Source: Mizuhopecten yessoensis
Lineage: Eukaryota
Assembly: GCF_002113885.1 (NCBI RefSeq)
Contig: NW_018408879.1
Span: 369,293-433,292 of the forward strand
Length of the DNA stretch: 64,000 bases
Direction of reading: 5' to 3'
Program-made: the position numbers and the translations under genes
Part shown: one piece after another, positions 29,601 through 63,176 of the stretch
Layout of the letters: each line of letters opens with the position of its first letter
How positions within the stretch are numbered: position 1 is the stretch's first letter
Notes under the pieces: generated by a model
Databases searched by the model: none
What the model was told of the DNA's origin: nothing
Seen by the model: only the letters and a program-made list of their open reading frames with translations

Positions 29601-32600
29601 CAACAATCTCAACATTCCTTAATTAATTACAAATAATCGGAGAAAACTTGTAAGCAAGCTTCCATTAGCTGTAGGCGACCTGTTTGTATGCAATACTCGG
29701 TGATTGATTGAGTTCTAGTGGTAGATAGTGTTTGTACTACTGAAGTTCTACCTCTGTGCTGATTGCTTCCATGTACAAAATTGAGATCCCAAGCAAGTAT
29801 AATTATTGGTGTAGAATTTGAAATTAAGTTTTTAGTGGATATCTTGATGCTTAACTTGGAAAGTAATTCTCTACATATTGGTCATTACAGAATGTTTTCT
29901 CACATATCTTGTTTAGGAGTCATTAAGATGAATACGCTATGTAACCTTCAAGTAGAAATGCAATCAGCTAGGTAACCTGTTTGTGGTATTAACTTGCATG
30001 TGATTTTGGTGTAGATATTAACTACAAATAGATTTCAAGGTTACAAGCGATAATGTCTATTGCAGTAGGTCTTTGTAAAGGTAGCACTCGCTGGTGGGGG
30101 TCACTAGGGAGGGGGGGGGGGATCTATATGAGGTGCAGTACTGGAGGATGCACACTAAAGCTCATTATTATTTAAAGATGTTGAAACACAGTTATTTCTG
30201 TGTTACAGCTGCCATTCCCAACCACAAGTTCTTTCTCTCGCCAAACTGCCATAGCCACACATGTGTATTTGTTTGTTAGATTTCTACATAGTTATTGTAA
30301 GATTTAAAAAAATTACTTCGATGCTGAGGTGGCAACTTTGGCATTAAATATAAATTAACTAGGTATAACATATATCGCATTTGAATAAAAAATACCACCA
30401 TTTAGTACATGTCATATCTGTACAGTTAATATAAACAGTATTTAATGAAGCCCTGGTCACATAAAGCTGTTGCTATGGTTAGAGGCCTATACAATCAGGA
30501 AAGATCCTCACAAAATTTCACCTGTTATAACATTGAACAACACAGTTCTTCAGTGTTGCAACCATATTTCAACGGAAAACTGCATTAACAAGGGAGGTAA
30601 TTTGGTGTGCTTTAACCCATGATGTGAATGCCATATATTTTTTCAGGCTGAGGGAGAAGATGATTTGAAGAAAATGCAATTGATGGAACTTGCTATTTTG
30701 AATGGAACTTACAGAGACTCGAAAATTGTTGCTCCCTTCGGGTTCTCACCCACAGGGCTTGCCCGTAAGTTTATTTTCACCCCCTGATCGCCATGACGAC
30801 TAACCAGTGACGAACAGGGTGGTTTTTCTTGACCATTAACAATTTGAAGTTTGACTCGTGTTGTTGATTTTTTGCAGCCTGATGGCGAGGATGACTTAAA
30901 GAAACGCCAACTTATGGAGTTAGCTATCATAAATGGCACATACCGTGACACTTCTAAACCCTCACCTTCATCGAACTCCCAAACATCAACGACTCGTAAG
31001 TCACGGTGACAATATACCAGCAGCCAACCCTATCTATGCCAGTGTGCGGTGTTTAGCTTTCCTCTAATTTTTTTGTACCTGTATTGCTACATCTTTTATT
31101 TATCTTTGCATCCTTTTGGCAAGAGGAATTTTAATATCCACACCCATTTTATTTTTTCTTTGTCATTTACTCTGTGGTTGAGTGGTAGATGCATGAAACC
31201 CACCCTTGCTTACACGGGGTAGATTGGACCAGACTTCCCAGTGCGGGGACCATATAGTGCTGCTTCCAGTATAGATGTAGTGGGTGTATTGTCTCACAGC
31301 TTATCATCATCATCTTCATCCTCCTCCTTCTCCTCATCATCATCTCTCCTCACCTCTCCCAGTAACGATCACCTCACTTGTCCATTTTTAATCAGTGCTC
31401 TGATTCCGTCACTTCCTAAAACCTGATAATTTAGAATTTTTAATGGTATTTTTTATATGTATTTATATCTTTGCTAACATGGAGCGTAGAATTTTCATCT
31501 GTTAAGGTGTTCCAACTAGACTAGACCGCTTTGTTAACATGTTTTGAACAAAACTGCACCAAAGGTTTAATATGCTGCACACATTCATTGTAAACAAGAT
31601 GAATCATTGTGAATTTGTTTTTATTTACGCTGTATATTTCTTCATGTATGGGCAAATTTGTTTTGAAGAGAGAGAAAAAGGCCCCGACAAGTTCCAGATA
31701 GTGATGTTCAGAAGCATGTTTCTAGATATTTTCATTTTAGCCAGAAAGGTGTGGAATTGTTTCCAAAACTTACACCAATACAAACGATTCTCATTGCACC
31801 AGCAGTTGCACTACTGTTTTATCCTATACACCCTCTCCAAATCCTCTATTCATCCCATTTTTTATACCTACAAATATCATTAGGTTTACAATGTACAAAA
31901 TACCTGGTCTGGCTGATCCTAATTAGAATTCATTTTAAAAGAAGCGTTGCATCAATACCCATATATCTGTTGTGGAAGTTTTGATTGACTACAAAACTAT
32001 TAATCACCATCACCATTCCGTAAATAAGGTACCATTCCATCTGCATGTGGTTGTGTTGGAGGGATCTAAAGGCCGGGCCCTAGAATGCATGGGTGAAATG
32101 GCTGAATTTTCTTGCAGTACTGGAACGGTTTTTTGTGCATGATTTTCTTGAGCCGGATGAAATACACACATCTTTGACCCGCTGTCTTGGAACAGACTTT
32201 GTTTGCTTTACTTATTTTGTATTTATTACACATGTTTTGATGTATTTTGCTAATCAGACCACAAAGCTACCTACATCAGCTTCACCTATCTTTTTATATG
32301 TACTAATCAAAATGCTTCCATTCAAATAAGTTAGTTTTGCTTGATGTTTGTGCCTAGCCACCCACATTGAATTCTAAGTTATTTACTTCTAATCAGTAAA
32401 AGCTCTATATTTGGTTTCATGGAATCTTTTCTCTTTTAAACACCTGGTATGTTTTTGTATATAAATTAATGTTCCCAGTAGATACTGATTCATTAAAATC
32501 AATTTGCACATGATGATTTTATAGCTCTTTCAAAGAACGGAGATTAAATCAACAAGAGGTGAAAGGCTGTAGTAGCTTTTGTGGTATCTATTTTCTTATT

Positions 32601-35600
32601 CTTCAGGTCTTAGAAAATGTATGACTTGATTTGAATGTTCATCTTTGGAGATTTCTGTCTTGACTTAATACTCCTGTTTAAATGTTCCCATAACATAGCG
32701 GCCATCTTTTATAAGTGGAGTTACACAGTGTTTCTTTATGGAGATAGGCGTTAGATATAAAGAGGAAAATATGATTCTGTTGTAATCTTGATAATTTGTT
32801 TTCAAATCCAAAATTATTCTTTGGTATGTAGAGTCGAAACAAAATAGAGAGCAACATTTTTAAGCAAATTAGATTGATAGACAAATACAAATCCTATATC
32901 CATATGAACAATGTTAAATACAAATAATAATATTTTTACAAAAATAGTTGATAGGTAAGTCCAGAAAATGGATCTTCAGTCATTTTATACATATGGTTAA
33001 AGTTTCGGGGGGAAAATGGATTTAGGTTTGGCATCAATAGAGTACTAACCTTGGTTAACATTTATGTTGATGAAATGGCTTGTAATATTTGTGCCACGTA
33101 TGTGTGTGACTTCTGGTGCAGCAAACATCTGTTGACAAATATGGACACACATTTTCAATGACCCTATACCGACCCCTGTATACTGGACCGGTAAATTTTA
33201 ATTATAATTCATTGTTTGACCAATTTTTGCCTTTTCACTTTTAAGCTGGTATGAAAAGACCCTGGGATCTTGCAAATATTCAAGGTGTAGGATTAGGAAG
33301 CCTAACTCCACCGTCAATGGGACAAGGAGGTTGGTTTATCAAAACTATCCAATCACAAGACCTCATCCTCTCACTAATTTCCTTTGTTTCTAACAGGCAT
33401 TCCTGTAGCTTGAATTCAAATATTCAAAATAAATTTTAGTCAAAGTTTCATGTTCTAATGGATAACTGATTTGATTGTAAGCAGACATATATATCAGCAA
33501 ATTGAAAATGTGTACCCATTCATTGTTAGCAGTATGTACAACAAGGTATGAATCTGTTATAAGTATTTTCTTGCTCTTTTTCTGATGTCGGATATGGTTA
33601 TTATTTAACAGTATACTTTCGGAGATGATATACAGATCAGTTGGTGTTGTATGAATGCAGATCAAATTCTGCATTGTACTAACTTGTTCCCTCTTTTGTA
33701 TTTTACTTACAGAAGGACCAAGGCTAATCACCACAGCACAACAGTTATCACACATTCCCAATCTACGCACGCAAACACCACAAGGTGCCCCCATCATCTT
33801 GACACCGAGGATCCCGACGAGTCAGGCTGGTTTAATGAACGGTCCCCCACCACTGGTGTCACCATCAGAGGCCGCCACAGGTCTGATGTATAATCCATAC
33901 GAGTACAATCCGTACTCTGCAGCCGCCTTTCACCAAGCAGCGGCACTCATTGAATATCCTTCCTCCTTTGACCAAGCCAACCTTGGTATGTTTCCCATAG
34001 TGCGATAGATTTTATCATCCAGTACTGGCTTATCAACTAGGGAAATCATTTTATGAATTGCACAATCATTGTTTTGTCAATATATATGTATGTTGATATT
34101 TTTTCTCATTTTTCATTTACATGGAATGCTATTTTTATCACATGAATTTAAATTAAATGAAATCCACCTGATTTTAAAGAAACGATGTATAGGGCTGTTC
34201 CAGATACGAGTATAGGGAGGAGTTGAAGGGAGTCACCAATTAATGATGATATAAGGGTGTTGGGGTCAGAAGAAACGTTAACATTTGTATAGTGGGCCCT
34301 AGTGGGGGATTGGTGGTGGTGGGGATTTCACAACAGCGGTTCCTCAAACCCACCCCATATGTTTTTCTGGAATAGCCCTGAAGGGTGTAGTTAGATTATG
34401 TGGTCATTTTATTATTTTATTCATATACACTTGATTTTATAAAGATGAATTCTTAAGTTTATTTACACCAACTTATAATCCTTCATGTTTGTAAATTATG
34501 TAAAAAAAAATCCCTCAATTTACTTTTGGAATTTATTCCCATATTTTACACAATTTATGTTTTTGTTCACACAATGTAATTCCTTGACATTCCAAACTCA
34601 TAGTTACTTGTGTTAGATTGTGTAAATCGCCTGTGTCTTCTGTAAATACCAATATTACACAGTAAATTTGTTCTATGCATCGGTTACTAGATTTAAGTCC
34701 CATATCTACAAAATTGTTGTAAGCTTAGATATGTAATGGGTCCTCTATGTTTGTAATGTAGAATTCTTTTCCACTTTACATGCAAATCAATGTATAGGAC
34801 AAACATGGTATGTATAATATACCCAAAGCGAAAGTCCCACAAATAGAGAATATCAAAAATAATTTACATATTTTGTAGTTAAAATATTGCTTTCTTCTGT
34901 TTAAATGCTTGTTAATTCTTCACCATATCCTAAGTCAACTTGTCTTAACTCATGTTACTTTGTGGATAAAACTACAAATACTATCTAAACTGTTGAACAT
35001 TTTGTCAAATAAATTTATAAAAAATTAATCTGGTAAGTCATAATGATAAGTTCACTGGTCCATTTCTTAAACAAGTCTTAATTCACTTACTAACGGAATA
35101 TGATGTGCATTCCATATCGAATCACACGAAGATCTGTAAAAGTAAATTGAACAAAGGAAATCTTAATTCTGTGATTCTGTAACAGTAACTTGAACAGAAG
35201 AAAGTCAAAATTCTGTGATTCTGCCATTCATGCATTCCATTTATATTCCTTTTGAAAAGGAATGCTGAAATATTTGTATATAAAATACTAGCAGTAACAA
35301 ACAGATGTACTAGTGGTGTAATACCCTTATTGACCCTCCAGTGGAGAACAGTTGACTTGAAGGATGATATATGTAATCACTCGTTTAAGTTATAGTTTCA
35401 CATTTATCCTCTGTGATGATCATACCCGTTCACCTACCAACCAACGCATTATCTCTTTTTCTCCCCACAGGCAAAGCATAACCAATCCAAACTGGAGTGG
35501 CCAAATCTAGACATAAACATGCGTCCCTATGCTTTGTAAAGTGGAGGTAGACTTATCTGTAGACATTTCACTTGTGTGCCTCTACTTTCACCATTTAATA

Positions 35601-38822: not shown

Positions 38823-40504
38823 AATTAAATTTGATTCTTCAAAGAATTTTCTGTACTCGTGGAATATTGTTTACAAAATGTTTTAAAGCAAATACGGAGT
38901 ATGATATGGATAGGTTAGAACTACTGTATACATTTTATATGTGGAAGGGATCCTAAGGAATGCCTTAGTATCGCGCTAGATACAGATCATTATTACTCAA
39001 TGCGTTAAATGTTTATTATTTTCTCGGGATATTAGTGCAAAGTCCATGCAAGTACAATCATAAGTTTGTGTAGGCAGATACAGCCAGTGTATTATTGAAT
39101 GTCCCCTTGTTATTGTAGATGTCCACACTTGTTAGATATATATATATACAACATGACATCAACATTTTCTTCCAACTTTTACAATGAAAACCGTGTGAAG
39201 AGAAACACGTGCAATTGTTGTTATATTTTAAGTATGTTTAGGAATAAAAGCACATCAGTTGAGCAAACAGCAGTGTTTATTTTCATTTTAAATTGATGGA
39301 TTCATGTTTTAACTGTAAATCTGCTTCCCTTTTTCATGTAGAATTAGATGTATATAAATTCATTGAAAATTGTCTAAATGGAATTAAAACCGCTTCCTTC
39401 CAGAGTTTTATTTCTGTATGATAAACGTTAAACAATTACCATTATAATTCTACTTCAAGAACTGCAAGTGCATTTACAGTTATACAACAAAGAACTCACT
39501 AGGGTGTTGCATACATGGATGGTTTTGGAACTGCTAGGAAGATTGAAAGCTGTAGACAAGCTTTAGAGGACGTTGGGATGGGATTACCAACCATCGTAAC
39601 CAAGCTTTAGGGGACATGGGGAGGGGCCACTTTGCCTTATTCTAGTCGCTATATTTATGTCATGTCTACAACCTTCTCAACTCTTTGCTTTTAATAGTGG
39701 AAATTGCTTTGAAATTAAATCTAGGTTCAGATTGAAGAGAGTTGGGAATGTTAAAATGTATACATTTGAACCTCGTGTTTATCTGGACCTAAAAAAGTTT
39801 TCCATAGTGTTTCATATTGTAGTCTGGAAATGGATTTTCCTGTCAGTAGTCCAGATAACATGGTTCCAATGTATACCAAAGTTGTCTTAACATTTGTTTT
39901 GTGTTGACTATATAGAGAATACAAGCTATTACAGTAGTACTGCACAGTGTTACAGATAGATATGCAGTCCTCTCGGACATATTGTGTAATATATCTATTA
40001 CATGTAGGCTTGGTTATACCCGATTGTACTCGACACTAATATGACATGTACTAACATTTTGAGGATTAAAGGTGTGCTATGTTAATGTAATTGGTATACA
40101 GTTATACATTAATCACTGTTCATTCATTCATTAATCAGGTCATTGATTGGTCAATGGCTGCTTGACCTGTGACATTTGCTTTTTATCTGTACACCATTCC
40201 TTCCCCTTCTATCTTACAAAACAAATGCCCTGAGTTGTGGGTTCGGCATGAGTTGATGTAATCTTTTTAAAGCATGAGGTTTTACTTCTCACCTGTAAAG
40301 CACACTTTAATCTACAAACTGTGTAGTAGTGTCACTGTTATTTGGGTAACAAACGTTATTATTACCAAGCAGAATTAATAATCATAATAATAATAATTTC
40401 TGTAATTAATTTTTCATATTGAATGCATAAAAAGACAATATTTATGGTAGCAGTATAAACTAACATTTCTTCTTTTTTCTTTTTATTTTTCACTAAACCT
40501 TCAG

Positions 40505-43500
40505 CTGCCTACCAACTAACTTATACCTGGTCACAGTTAAAGTCGAACCCCTTGCCTGTCCGTACGTATCCATGCTGTGCTGCTGCTACTACTACTTCTG
40601 CATCGTATTGGTCAGTCGGTCAGTCGGTCCAAACCTAACACATGTACTACTGGAGGGGTTTGTTGGGTAGCCGACACTGCACCACTTTAGACGGACCGAC
40701 AACCGTATTTGTTGACTTGCATCACGAACCATCCACCTTAACGCTCCATTGGTAACTGCCTGGCAGTGGGACATAGAAGTTTACCAGTAACTACTTACTT
40801 CCAGACGTACTGAATCAGTACCCTGCCTTCTGCAAACAACATCCACTAACATTGCCTTCTACCAGCCTAGTGACTCGGAGGCTGAGCCAATTAACATTCT
40901 TATATCAGAACAGATGGACTATATACAAGTGTGATTATAGTGTTATATTTACACATGTTTGTATGAAAGAGCCCACCGTCCTTGTGTATAAAAAAATTTG
41001 ACAATGAATTGTCAAAATGTCTAAGTGCCTGAACATTACTCGTTAACTAATTCCTTTGTACTAATTTGACTGTTGTGTCCGTTTCCCACCATAACAGTTA
41101 TATATAGCATTGATTGTGTGCAGACAAAATATTGCAACAAAAATTTACCAATCACTATTTTTCGTTGAGACATGTCTATATATCGTATATATATTCATAT
41201 ATATCTTCTACATTTACCTGTACATTAACCTTGTTAAACCAGAATTTGATTAATATTGTTTTATGTTTATGTACAGTTTTTGGAGCTTTCTCTGCGTAGC
41301 TGTTTATACCTATTATATATATATATCCCCGACCATTTTTTCTCAAGGGGACAAATTTTCATTAATCGAAATCAAAATATAACATTTGGTCTTAAAAGTT
41401 TAATAATGTTAAACTTCCTTTTTTAATTCTTAAAAAGAATGCTTCAAGATAAATATACAAATTCATGGAGATTAATCACTATACAATTATTGTGCCCTGT
41501 TTTTGAGTTTTGAAAGTGAACCCTGTAAATGTCCTAGTAACCCTCGCCCAAGATGAGGAGATTGGTATGCTGAGGCTGTGTTATCCTACCAAACACCTGT
41601 ACTACCGGGCATGGCGGCTCCATCCACCAGGCTCACCAATCAAGGGCACTTTGGCATGATCAGCTCAAAGTAAATGTCATTGATTTTCTTTGTTTTCATA
41701 AAACTTGAATTATAACTACATAATGTGAAGTGCTCGGTACTTGCGTATAACAGGTCTGGTGTTTGGTATGATGATATGGTCGTCACTAACCTGTGACTGA
41801 ATTCCAACCATGTTATATATTACTAGGAAGTGATACTCTCTGTCCTTTGTTTGGTGGCAGTAAGGTGAGAGAGAGGCCCCACATAGTGTCATCAGACAAG
41901 ATCTCAACCTGGACATGCATAACCTGTCAAGTTTGGTATCGACAAATCTTGCAAACTTCTGAAGTATTTGGAATCTTTTCCAGCGATCATTTCCCCTGAT
42001 GTTATGCATGTCTGGGTTGATTATGGTTCAAACTTAATCATTTAAAATGCAATGTTGAAAGCTCCACAATATCTATCCTCTCAATATTAATTGGACATAG
42101 TATGAAAAATTATAACTGCCGGCAAAACTTTGTTGTTTTGATTGCTTCCAATATAATTATTAAAATGATGCGAGAGTTACTGACAATCCACCTCTTGACG
42201 CTTTCTTAACAGCCCAGGATCATGTTTCATTTTACAGTACTGTACATTTATCATGTTGATTGAACTTTTGCACACTTCAAAGTAGATTTATATGTCAGAA
42301 GTTTAGATCATTATCTGGGAAGTTTTCAAAGCAACAGGCTTTTGTGAGTCTGCTTCTTACTTGTGAGCTTATGAGCACAGCTTTCTGTTACAAAACCACA
42401 GTGATTGGTGTAGTGTTATTCCCACTAGGAGAGACTGTTCACTTCCTGTGGATTCTGACTGCTTCATTCAGTTTTAATTCAATAGTTGATAAAACAGGAT
42501 TGTGTATAATATATAAACTAAAGTTATTGAAGGGAATTTTTTCTGTAATATTGTAAGTTTGCTTTATATAGAACTGAGCATACTCTGTTTAGCTATCAAT
42601 GCTCACCTTGTCCACAAAATTGACCTTGGCTGATCAGTTAGGGTCCTAATACCTTGAGCGGTCAGAATCCATGAGAGGATGAACTATTGGCTGATCTGAT
42701 ACTGACATGATACTCGTTGTTGTACATATCGTTAGGACTTTCACATTGATGATGACAGGGTATATTTGGAAGAGATCTTTTTTTTGATCTAGTTTATCTA
42801 GATATTGTTTTTTTATCTGTCCTGCAATTTCAAACATATCAATATTTTATATCATTGTAGCGAGAAAAGAGATCAAAACAATTAACATAAAGGCATTGTA
42901 CTTAGTATATATATATATTATATACATTTATATAAAGTTTTTGTTTATATTTCTATGCATTAAGTGGGAATATCACCGTACTAACTGCTGTGTACTGAAT
43001 GGGTTCTGCCATGTTATTGGTAACTTTTGTATAGAAACATCATAGCATTTGTAACTTGTAACCTGTATATAATCTTCATGAAAATTACATTTATTAGAAT
43101 AGAGAATAGAGNAAAAAAAAAAAAAAAATGAGAACAAATATATTGAAAAGAACAATAGTAGCTATGCAATTGATGATCATATCCACCTGCTTCCAGACTA
43201 ACCTACCTACTGACTACATGTAGCTGGCATTTGCCAAGTATTCAGTGAATGGTTGGAGAATTTATTATTGAGATTTTTTGATATTTCAATTTTGGATTGT
43301 CTTCCAAAGATTGCACAAAAAAGGGATAGTTTATTTTTTTTACAAGACCTGTATATACTCGATGAATATAATATTTGAAATGGGAGTTCCTCAGAATATA
43401 TGCACACATTTTTAAATTAATTTTATTCAGAATTTATTTATTCCGATAGTGAAGGTTGATAATGACCAATGAGAACAGTTTATGATATCATGATACAATC

Positions 43501-47910: not shown

Positions 47911-49206
47911 GGTGATTGGGTGACCTTGACGTGGAGTACGTGTTAGCGTCGTGGGCCGTCTGTCCAACACACAAGGGACGTTAACGGGATTTTTGCTTGC
48001 CCTTTATTACAAGGATATCAATATTTACCTTTATTACCAAGATATGCTATAGAGAAGGGATGGATCCTGATCCCCGCTCTGTGATCGACACATCCGAGGT
48101 AATTAATAACAGCGAGATTGATTTACAAGTAAAATACTATTTGGTCGTACGTGCATATCAAGTAGGTCATATACACAGTAAACAGGCCAGCGATGACTTC
48201 TTTTCGCTTTATATACAAATATGACAGTGACAGGCAGTTTTGATACCGTTACCTTGTAAAATAATAAAAGCACAACGAAAAATATCCCGCTTCGTCTCTT
48301 GGAGCGTTGATTTCGACTTTGAGCAGTTGCGCAACAGTTTCTCCTGGAGTGATGAAAATATGCGATTGATATGGAATCTGTATTGAAATCTTTTTATTTT
48401 GTTATTTATATAGGTGATTTCCCTTTGAATTATCAGAAGTCAGTCGTACAGGTTCCAGGTTAAACCTTATATGTACGCCCTAAAGGACGTCAAGGTTCAC
48501 GGCGTCTAGTTAACGTGGCTACGGCGTCTGGTTAACGGGGCTCCATTGCTAATGGCGCGCTTTCCAAATATGTGTACCATATCAGAAAATTATTAATGCA
48601 TATCTTAGAATATCAATTAAAAGGTCGGTCAATACATAGTGAGTCTTATCTACTTCTACAGACAATCCATGATCCACACCTTCTGATAGGAAAAAAGTCT
48701 TGGAAGTTTTGCAGATAGATAATAATTTGTGTTGCTTACTGTAGGGGAGAACGTACATTAATCCGCATTTAATGACTCTCTAGTACAAATAATGCACCAC
48801 CACTGACATCAATCAACACGAATGAAAACATGCCAACTTTGGAGTTAAATGTAGGCAAAGCACAGGAACTACTACATGTTTATCTTTGAATCACGAGAGT
48901 AGGATATATTTAGTGTCTACTAGCCATGTATAACTGGGAACATGACGTCAACTATCACATTTACATAATAGACATACGAACATGTATGTACACAGATTTA
49001 CCGATACCATTCTCCTGCGGGTTTGAGACACTAACTGGTATATAGCTGTGATCTAACCTATTATTATATCACAAACCGCCAATATTGAAACACTTCGAAA
49101 TGATCTGCAAGTAGACGGCACGGGACGGGAGTAGGACTTCAAAATAAAATCACAATCACTATGACCAGGGGAAAGTTGAGCGAAAAGTTATTTTCAACAA
49201 GAAAAC

Positions 49207-52200
49207 GGTTACTATGGTAACATGTGTCCGGAGTCATTGTACCAACACTTGGTAAAGGGTTACTGTAGTAACATATGTCCAGGTTTATTGTACGTACACT
49301 AGGCACAGTGTAACTGTGGTGACATGTGTCCCGGGTAATTGTACCTACACTAGGTACAGGGTTACTGTGGTAACATGTGCTCTGGGTAATTGTACCTTAA
49401 CTAGGCACAATGTTACTGTACCTACACTAGGTACAGGGTTACTATGGTAGCATGTGTCCAGGGTTATTGTACCTACACTAGCAGGTACAGGGTTACTTTG
49501 GTAACATGTGTCCAGGGTTATTGCACCTACACTAGGCACAGTGCTACTGTGGTAACATGTGTCCAGGTTATTGTACCTACACTAGGTACAGGGTTACTGT
49601 GGAAACATGCGTCCAGGGTTATTGTTAAGCACTATAAACATTGTTACTGTGGTAACCTATGTCCAGGTTTATTGTACCTACACTAGGTAGAGGGTTACTA
49701 TAGTAGCATGTGTACAGGGTTACTGTACCTACACTAGGTACAGGGTTACTGTACCAACACTAGGTACAGGGTTACTGTACCTACACTATGTACAGGGTTA
49801 CTATGGTAGCATGTGTCCAGGGTTATTGTACCTACACTAGGTAGAGGGTTACTATAGTAGCATGTGTACAGGGTTACTGTTCCTACACTAGGTACAGGGT
49901 TACCATGTTAACATATATCTGGGGTTATTGTACCTACACTACCAGGGTTATTGTACCTACACTAGGAACAGTGCTACTGTGGTAACATGTGTCCAGGATT
50001 ATTGTACCTACACTAGGCACAAGGTTACCGGGGTAACATGTGTCCGGGGTTATTGTTACTACATTAGACACAAAATTACGGTGGTAACATGTGTCTAGGG
50101 TAATTATACCTACACTAGACAAAGGGATACTGTGGTAACGTGTGTCCGGGGTTATTGTACCTACAATAGGTACAGGGTTACTGTGGTAACATGTGTCCAT
50201 GATTATTGTACCTACACTAGAAACAGAGTTACTGTGGCAAAAAAAATCCGGGGATATTGTACCTACACTAGACGCAGAGTTACTATGGTAACATGGGTCC
50301 ATGGTTATTGTACCTACACTAGAAAGTGTCCCGGGTAATTGTACCTACACTAGGTACAGGATTACCGTGTTAACATATATAGGGGTTATTGTGCCTATAC
50401 TAGGTATATTGCTACTGTGGTAACATGTGTCCAGGATTATTGTACCTACACTAGGCACAGTGCTACGGTGGTAACATGTGTCCAGGTTTATTGTACCTAC
50501 ACTAGGTAGAGGGTTACTATAGTAGCATGTGTACAGGGTTACTGTTCCTACACTAGGTACAGGGTTACCATGTTAACATATATCTGGGGTTATTGTACCT
50601 ACACTAGGTACAGGATTACTGTGGTAACATGTGTCCATGATTATTGTACCTACATTAGACACAAGGTACAGGGTTGCCGTGGTAACATGTGTCCGGGGTT
50701 CTCCTACTTCACTAGAGGAATACCGTGGTAACATATATCCGGGGATATTGTACCTACACTAGACGCAGAGTTACTATGGTAACATGTGTCCATGGTTATT
50801 GTACCTACACTAGAAACATTGTTACTGTAGTAACATATGTCCGGGGATATTGTACCTACACGAGACGCAGAGTAACTGTGGTAACATGTGTCCAGGGTAA
50901 TTGCACCTACACTAGGTACATGGTTACTGTGGTTACATATATCCGGTGTTATTTTACCTACGTTAGGTATATGGTTACTGTTGTAACATGTGTACGGGGT
51001 TATTGTGCCTACACTAGGTACAGGGTAACTGTGCTAACATTTATCCAGGGATATTGTACCTACACTAGACGCAGAGTTACTATGGTAACATGGGTCCATG
51101 GTTATTGTACCTACACTAGAAGCAGAGTTACTGTGGCAAAAAAAATCCGGGGATATTGTACCTACACTAGACGCAGAGTTACTATGGTAACATGTGTCCA
51201 TGGTTATTGTACCTACACTAGAAGCAGAGTTACTGTGGCAAAAAAAATCCGGGGATATTGTACCTACACTAGGTACAGGATTACCGTGTTAACATATATA
51301 GGGGTTATTGTGCCTATACTAGGTATATTGCTACTGTGGTAACATGTGTCCAGGTTTATTGTACCTACATTAGACACAAGGTACAGGGTTGCCGTGGTAA
51401 CATGTGTCCGGGGTTATTGTACCTACAATAGGTACAGGGTTACTGTGGTAACAGGTGTCCATGGTTATTGTACCTACACTAGAAGCAGAGTTACTGTGGC
51501 AAAAAAAATCCGGGGATATTGTACCTACACTAGGTACAGGATTACCGTGTTAACATATATAGGGGTTATTGTGCCTATACTAGGTATATTGCTACTGTGG
51601 TAACATGTGTCCAGGATTATTGTACCTACACTAGGCACAATGTTACCGTGGTAACGTGTGTCCGGGGTTATTGTACCTACAATAGGTACAGGGTTACTGT
51701 GGTAACAGGTGTCCATGGTTATTGTACCTACACTAGAAAGTGTCCCGGGTAATTGTACCTACACTAGGTACAGGATTACTGTGGTAACATGTGTCCATGA
51801 TTATTGTACCTACATTAGACACAATGTACAGGGTTGCCGTGGTAACATGTGTCCGGGGTTCTCCTACTTCACTAGAGGAATACCGTGGTAACATATATCC
51901 GGGGATATTGTACCTACACTAGACGCAGAGTTACTATGGTAACATGGGTCCATGGTTATTGTACCTACACTAGAAAGTGTCCCGGGTAATTGTACCTACA
52001 CTAGGTACAGGATTACCGTGTTAACATATATAGGGGTTATTGTGCCTATACTAGGTATATTGCTACTGTGGTAACATGTGTCCAGGATTATTGTACCTAC
52101 ACTAGGCACAGTGCTACTGTGGTAACATGTGTCCAGGATTATTGTACCTACACTAGGCACAAGGTTACCGGGGTAACATGTGTCCGGGGTTATTGTATTT

Positions 52201-62703: not shown

Positions 62704-63176
62704 AGATTTAGTAACGTTTTCTTATCGGTTATATCTGTCTACCGGGACACTAACGGTAGATTTAGTAACGTTTTCTTATCGGTTATATCTGTCTACCGGG
62801 ACACTAACGGTAGATTTAGTAACGTTTTCTTATCGGTTATATCTGTCTACCGGGACACTAACGGTAGATTTAGTAACATTTTCTTATCGGTTATATCTGT
62901 CTACCGGGACACTAACGGTAGATTTAGTAACGTTTTCTTATCGGTTATATCTGTCTACCGGGACACTAACGGTAGATTTAGTAACGTTTTCTTATCGGTT
63001 ATATCTGTCTACCGGGACACTAACGGTAGATTTAGTAACGTTTTCTTATTGGTTATATCTGTCTACCGGGACACTAACGGTAGATTTAGTAACGTTTTCC
63101 TATCGGTTAAATCTGTCTACCGGGACACTAACGGTAGATTTAGTAACGTTTTCTTATCGGTTAAATCTGTCTACCG
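62704..63176. repeat. 54-bp minisatellite, about 8.8 near-identical copies (AGATTTAGTAACGTTTTCTTATCGGTTATATCTGTCTACCGGGACACTAACGGT)
   Basis: Exact 54-bp period (62704, 62758, ...), only a few substitutions. Confidence 0.97.

Follow-up and report, generated by a model that had tools for sequence, protein, structure and literature searches.

Mutually exclusive exons need one device that forbids their joining and another that chooses between them, and to our knowledge few of these devices are understood so far. For exons 2 and 3 of alpha-tropomyosin, joining is prevented by steric exclusion: the mapped branch point is 41 nucleotides (nt) away from the upstream donor, with a pyrimidine tract free of AG after it. 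In the exon pair 4a/4b of OGDH, exclusivity is enforced by distant branch points, mapped to +25 to +41, in the terminal loop of a stable hairpin (PMC7969005). With regard to choice, the protein Quaking competes with SF1 at branch-type ACUAA(C) sites, as at RAI14 exon 11, where two tandem ACUAAC elements are needed (PMC13004596), and the autoregulation of mammalian Quaking acts on isoforms of the 3′ end (PMC5695090). Hairpins can also shorten or mask the sequence between splicing signals, as in yeast COF1 (PMC3239191) and, according to the work cited in PMC5224494, in the adenovirus E1A intron. Here, we analysed a 64,000-nt stretch of the genome of the scallop Mizuhopecten yessoensis (contig NW_018408879.1, positions 369,293 to 433,292; this whole stretch is called the window, and all coordinates refer to it). 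Its forward strand carries a Quaking/HOW-type STAR gene in which two exons, 5a and 5b, are separated by a short interval with a hairpin that presents ACUAAC in its loop.

In RNA, exons 5a and 5b are both in use and are truly mutually exclusive. The hairpin between them is, according to the folding models, a real local stem-loop with an exposed ACUAAC. We propose, with a probability of about 0.4, that the loop displays this hexamer to Quaking or SF1 as a binding site by which the exon choice is set, with AUUAAC further downstream as the working branch point. The two exons code for a piece of the surface by which a splicing regulator recognises RNA, and between them stands the hexamer that this regulator prefers. 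If the proposal is true, a splicing factor sets its own RNA-binding flavour by competition at a branch-type site, which would link exclusion by steric hindrance and distant branch points, competition between Quaking and SF1, and Quaking autoregulation.

Use of exons 5a and 5b in RNA

The exons concerned are the following.

Exon 3, forward strand: contains GPRG..VRGKGS.
24850-24993, forward strand: exon 4, the common upstream exon with the end of the KH domain (..NWEHL..KKLLVPA), from a scan of open reading frames; in the RNA reads, its last 23 bases are the loose-end consensus ahead of both 5a and 5b.
30647-30764, forward strand: exon 5a, 118 nt, QUA2 helix type by translation; in reads, preceded by exon 4 sequence and joined to 33246 and 33713.
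30878-30995, forward strand: exon 5b, 118 nt, QUA2 helix type by translation; in reads, preceded by exon 4 sequence and joined to 33246 and 33713.
33246-33329, forward strand: optional in-frame exon, 84 nt, used after 5a or 5b (joins 30764>33246, 30995>33246 and 33329>33713).
33713-33985, forward strand: exon 6, proline/tyrosine-rich tail, from open reading frame and joins; its presumed end is set by the GT at 33986, and reads align to 33987.

RNA reads from two deep libraries and from two others were aligned to positions 29000-34500, and a join was listed from three reads upwards. Five joins were seen: 30764>33246, 30764>33713, 30995>33246, 30995>33713 and 33329>33713. The four that lead downstream from 5a or 5b were each covered by 5-53 reads in two libraries. 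A join from 5a to 5b (30764>30878) was not found at the three-read threshold, whereas other joins amounted to about 40-90 junction reads per library. Reads at the acceptors of 5a and 5b are preceded by one and the same sequence, with which exon 4 ends. The exclusivity of the two exons follows from these observations, since exon 4 is joined to either of them, either is joined to the next exons and no 5a>5b join is listed. This supports the original prediction, which supposed a choice between the two exons. Inclusion of both (118+118 nt) would shift the reading frame. Acceptor-side counts of 5a and 5b were 31:57 in library X21 and 38:19 in library X23, and the share of 5a was about 45% in X21 and about 65-85% in X23. 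This difference in ratio between libraries argues that the choice is regulated between samples. No lariat-type loose ends are listed in the RNA reads.

Use of the 84-nt exon seems to be independent of the choice between 5a and 5b in X21 and less so in X23. In X21, two reads join 33826 in exon 6 back to 30684 in exon 5a, with 17 extra letters in between; this back-join is either a chimera or a trace of circular RNA.

Hairpin and exposure of ACUAAC

The interval between the two exons contains the following elements.

30765-30877, forward strand: 5a-5b interval, 113 nt, GT..AG, which starts with GUAAGU and ends with UUUUUUGCAG; its own removal is not seen in reads.
30780-30822, forward strand: interrupted hairpin of 13 base pairs (bp).
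30799-30804, forward strand: ACUAAC, a branch-site and STAR-protein hexamer with its A at 30803 (A30803), in the 12-nt loop 30795-30806.
30815-30817, forward strand: CAG, 14 nt past A30803 and concealed in the 3′ stem arm; not an acceptor in use, as no join or loose end occurs there in the RNA reads.
30823-30830: U-rich run directly after the stem.
30835-30840, forward strand: AUUAAC, a candidate for the working branch point, 38 nt upstream of the 5b acceptor.
30859-30877, forward strand: pyrimidine-rich tract (UGUUGUUGAUUUUUUG) and CAG acceptor of 5b, whose use is seen in reads.

RNAfold pairs C30780 with G30822, C30781 with G30821, CCCUG (30782-30786) with CAGGG (30815-30819), UCG (30788-30790) with CGA (30811-30813) and CAU (30792-30794) with GUG (30807-30809). 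The stem of 30780-30794 with 30807-30822 has its 13 pairs in four blocks and closes the 12-nt loop GACGACUAACCA. The predicted free energy of the hairpin is -14.9 kcal/mol (z -2.59), and 4 of 200 dinucleotide shuffles fold as well. For the segment from +7 to +56 after the 5a donor, 800 shuffles gave a z of -2.69 and p 0.011. The same stem occurs in both the minimum-energy and the centroid fold of the whole 113-nt intron. Partition functions were calculated in three contexts, namely the intron alone, the intron with 65 nt on either side, and 5a, intron and 5b together. In all of them, the stem pairs have a probability of 0.98-1.0 and ACUAAC is unpaired with a probability of 0.86-1.0. The motif ACUAAY occurs at 88 sites on both strands of the 64-kb window, fewer than in shuffles; it would be expected by chance with a probability of about 0.08 in a 113-nt intron and of about 0.01 in the loop. 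The hairpin on its own is a structure of about 1 in 100 that carries a motif of about 1 in 10.

In the original prediction, a hairpin had been drawn by hand at 30777-30822. Its arms, loop and motif positions proved to be exact, and the stem was recovered by RNAfold with pair probabilities of at least 0.98 and with ACUAAC in the loop. Likewise, A30803 is 39 nt away from the 5a donor, as had been claimed. Its distance to the 5b acceptor is 74 nt, and AGs are indeed present in between (30806-30807, 30816-30817 and 30848-30849).

Candidate branch points

The A of AUUAAC, A30839, lies 75 nt from the 5a donor and 38 nt from the 5b acceptor. AUUAAC is preferred over the loop hexamer since the CAG 14 nt past A30803 would be a usable acceptor, whereas the AAG lies merely 9-10 nt past the A of AUUAAC. 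In nearly all other introns of this kind, yUAAC or yUAAU is found 20-45 nt before the 5b acceptor. The working branch point is probably AUUAAC or UUGAC at -23, and A30803 is the less likely candidate. AUUAAC had already been favoured as the real branch point in the original prediction; the choice fits the AG positions and the introns of relatives. A second copy of CAUUAACAA is present ahead of 5a at 30583-30591.

The AG-free zones of the lineages with a short intron have a median length of 59 nt before 5b, compared to 26 nt before 5a (Wilcoxon p 0.001). In four species, the whole 5a-5b intron contains no AG, and in lineage L016 ACUAAC stands in the first third of an AG-free intron. The AG-free zone of the scallop before 5b is the shortest of all, with 26 nt.

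The exon pair and its interval in other lineages

Relatives were collected by a word search with an open frame through 5a and, in addition, by a scan of metagenomes with alignment of the 5b peptide; lineages were grouped by exon peptide similarity only. In total, 25 distinct intervals flanked by a 5a-type and a 5b-type exon were obtained, with the pair present in 11 further invertebrate lineages. The lengths of the pair exons are all 1 mod 3 in every lineage. In nine lineages, the scallop included, the interval measures 73-124 nt, while the flanking introns reach kilobases. Two or three other lineages with different peptides, which may be annelids, have intervals of 292-842 nt. Judged by these sequences, the exon pair is old and widespread, and the short interval, although not universal, persists in one large group. 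Many host-associated metagenome contigs, such as L024 and L027-L044, carry a 5b-type exon with no 5a-type exon within 1.2 kb; in these, the pair would be either lost or separated by a much longer interval.

Motifs of the type CUAAY are concentrated in the interval. Outside its last 45 nt, where branch points normally lie, 18 were counted in 1204 nt (15 per kb), about ten times the background of 1.5-2.2 per kb in the same loci; the first 110 nt past the 5b donor have 0.5 per kb. The motif is present in 6 of 11 lineages, compared to about one expected (p 4e-5 to 4e-4), and if the last 65 nt are left out, in 4 of 11 (p 0.001-0.005). Introns of 292-336 nt contain three CUAAY at 30-110 nt past the 5a donor and about 180-270 nt from the acceptor. 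As these are far from the acceptor, with many AGs in between, they cannot be branch points there. The enrichment, which includes lineages where a branch-point role is excluded in this way, thus favours a role in protein binding.

A high-affinity Quaking site, according to the consensus from systematic evolution of ligands by exponential enrichment, consists of two elements within about 20 nt. This bipartite arrangement (ACUAAY-N1-20-UAAY) is found in L002 as ACUAAU-N5-UAAC and in L018, L056, L025 and L026 as ACUAAU-N12-ACUAAC. In the latter four, the 24-nt block is identical while its flanks have diverged, and it lies 32-60 nt before 5b. It looks like a dual Quaking/SF1 branch site and resembles the dual site of RAI14, by which Quaking out-competes SF1. 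Pairs of ACUAAY 14-15 nt apart are also found in the scallop window on the forward strand at 40035-40055 and 41046-41065, downstream of the coding exons, where they may serve Quaking as binding sites in the 3′ region of its own gene.

Local structure was assessed with shuffles confined to a 50-nt window, since the U-rich 3′ end biases shuffles of the whole intron. Directly past the 5a donor, the mean z of the first 50 nt was -1.06, compared to 0.04 (standard deviation 0.99) in 131 background windows of the same loci (Mann-Whitney p 0.001; per-lineage median p 0.003). Past the 5b donor, no significant excess was observed with window-only shuffles. Most of the short intervals have a small stem-loop of their own that starts 10-17 nt past the 5a donor; the underlying count of perfect stems is descriptive only and does not register the scallop stem, which is interrupted. 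Two related species have retained both arms of a 6-bp stem, although the loop and the next 25 nt have changed. These comparisons suggest, short of proof, a recurrent structure just past the 5a donor.

Another intronic element common to distant relatives is found at 31040-31062 (CAGUGUGCGGUGUUUAGCUUUCC), about 45-65 nt past the 5b donor. GUGUGC occurs at +32 to +47 past this donor in L016, L014 and L021, and the group of L004, L019 and L010 has GCACAC at +47-49 inside a local hairpin. We regard the element at 31040-31062 as a probable conserved element that controls the splicing of 5b.

Proposed mechanism and alternative explanations

We propose that the loop hexamer, 39 nt past the 5a donor, is a site for proteins with KH and QUA2 domains (SF1 and Quaking) and not the main branch point. 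A protein on the loop would sit just downstream of 5a and upstream of 5b. Quaking follows a position rule, by which a site downstream of an exon favours it and a site upstream disfavours it. By this rule, Quaking on the loop would favour 5a and disfavour 5b, and the gene would tune which QUA2 helix its own protein carries. In addition, the fold may compact the path from the 5a donor to AUUAAC, from 75 nt to about 35 nt, and would bury a CAG, and both effects could help to stop 5a-5b splicing. A wider form of the proposal seems rather improbable to us. It holds that Quaking picks its own QUA2 helix by competition with SF1 at CUAAY motifs between the exons, that the same element enforces exclusion, and that this feedback is ancient and shared by molluscs and other lophotrochozoans.

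Several observations speak against a displayed Quaking site. The core hexamer of a bipartite element is present and is predicted to be single-stranded, but a second UAAY half-site is absent within 1-20 nt of the scallop ACUAAC on either side; the nearest one is UAAC at 30837-30840, 32 nt downstream of the hexamer. The scallop stem aligns with none of the relatives compared, among which there was no other scallop. The display of CUAAY in loops is uneven across lineages (unpaired probability 0.27-0.97), and ACUAAC lies clearly in an apical loop in one other lineage only, L016. The excess of structure past the 5a donor is modest, as p rises to 0.047 when each lineage is represented by its least structured member and an excess is lacking in four of nine lineages, and the whole scallop intron scores a z of only -1.6. 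Furthermore, CUAAC is the local branch consensus, as illustrated by UACUAAC about 30 nt ahead of the exon 6 acceptor, so that some of the enrichment could be due to spare or distant branch points. Of the original prediction, in which folding shortens the donor-to-branch distance and the loop lets Quaking act on its own QUA2 choice, the exclusivity and the exposed motif stand and are joined by the CUAAY enrichment. Conservation of the stem, by which the prediction was to be judged, is not seen in the relatives compared, loop display of the hexamer is clear in L016 only, and Quaking binding and distance shortening keep a conditional place in our proposal.

Some of these observations would also be explained if hairpin and hexamer had no role at all. 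Exclusivity would then result from the reading frame alone, with transcripts that include both exons or neither being degraded, and the short intron would be a remnant of tandem duplication. Such a coincidence, which we consider somewhat less likely than our proposal, fits with the z of the whole intron, with the stem that is not conserved, with the four lineages that lack excess structure and with the chance of about 0.08 for one ACUAAY in 113 nt. It also fits with the 1 mod 3 lengths of every pair exon in every lineage and with the long-intron lineages that keep the pair. However, degradation alone usually leaves some double-inclusion reads, and here double inclusion stayed below the three-read threshold among about 90 donor-side junction reads per library. 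A further point against coincidence is the intron held short in nine lineages. Moreover, the hairpin alone has a p of about 0.01, and the place at which structure recurs is also enriched about tenfold in CUAAY in independent lineages.

The device of OGDH and alpha-tropomyosin, a distant branch point with steric exclusion, is slightly less likely still for the scallop. Here, A30803 would be the branch point for joining exon 4 to 5b. At 39 nt from the 5a donor, it would not allow U1 and U2 to assemble together, so that 5a could not be spliced to 5b. This distance is below the limit of about 50 nt quoted for OGDH (PMC7969005), and the absence of a listed 5a>5b join in the RNA reads is as expected. 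The sequence gACUAAC is the intron's best match to the branch consensus of the species, of which exon 6 has UACUAAC, and the stem is followed by the U-rich run. The hairpin would display the branch point and hide the CAG 14 nt downstream, and Quaking could still compete with SF1. Among the relatives, the long AG-free zone before 5b, including the four AG-free introns and that of L016, and the interval held at 73-124 nt in nine lineages with flanking introns of kilobases are in line with such a device. In the scallop, on the other hand, the zone from A30803 to the acceptor is not free of AG. The CAG (AG at 30816-30817) and an AAG (30848-30849) lie 14 and 46 nt past A30803 and are both unused, so the stem must mask one while the other is ignored, and no other lineage has a shorter AG-free zone before 5b. 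A branch motif at canonical distance exists with AUUAAC, and most other lineages have a similar one. Lineages with introns of 292-842 nt keep the pair although a steric block is not possible there.

Three further candidates were rejected: competing docking-site and selector structures (Dscam and 14-3-3 xi type) by a crude duplex test, in which, for seven species, the best duplexes of the 100 nt past 5b with either the intron between the exons or the 150 nt ahead of 5a did not surpass those of shuffles (z -1.2 to +2.4); a repeat or transposon origin by the single copy of the interval in the 988-Mb genome; and a known RNA family for the hairpin by the Rfam 15 covariance models, which gave no match to 30300-31400 on either strand at E up to 1.

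Other sequences in the window

At 62749-63132, ACTAAC occurs eight times at an exact spacing of 54 nt, which points to a tandem repeat. The region 49100-52100 is a long run of degenerate short tandem units with repetitive open frames (..GYCTYTR..) in all three forward frames, and looks like a minisatellite rather than a gene.

Comparison with known systems

The scallop locus resembles OGDH 4a/4b in its duplicated, mutually exclusive exon pair, in its short, size-restricted intron and in a branch-type motif in a hairpin loop past the upstream donor (39 nt, compared to 25-41 nt in OGDH). Several relatives of the scallop also share the long AG-free zone before the second exon. In contrast, the AG-free zone of the scallop itself is short, with CAG and AAG after the motif; a very long pyrimidine tract is missing and a branch motif at canonical distance is present. 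The scallop motif is, in addition, a candidate binding site of the gene's own product, and the branch point is predicted from the sequence. With alpha-tropomyosin, it shares mutual exclusivity and the distance of the candidate branch point from the donor (39 nt, compared to 41 nt). However, A30803 is a candidate only, and the AGs argue against it.

Compared to RAI14 and to the autoregulation of mammalian Quaking, the same hexamer is found upstream of an alternative exon, and the regulated gene would be Quaking itself. RAI14 differs in its two elements, whereas the scallop has one and four related species carry ACUAAU-N12-ACUAAC. The mammalian autoregulation does not act on the RNA-binding QUA2 helix, whereas that of the scallop would. 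As in E1A and COF1, a local stem would take tens of nucleotides off the effective path and hide an AG. Those hairpins, however, lie between branch point and acceptor and promote splicing, whereas the scallop stem is placed ahead of the likely branch point, on the side of the donor, where it would impede splicing of the interval. All ingredients thus have precedents; what is new is that the RNA-binding helix of the regulator itself would be encoded by the exons under its control.

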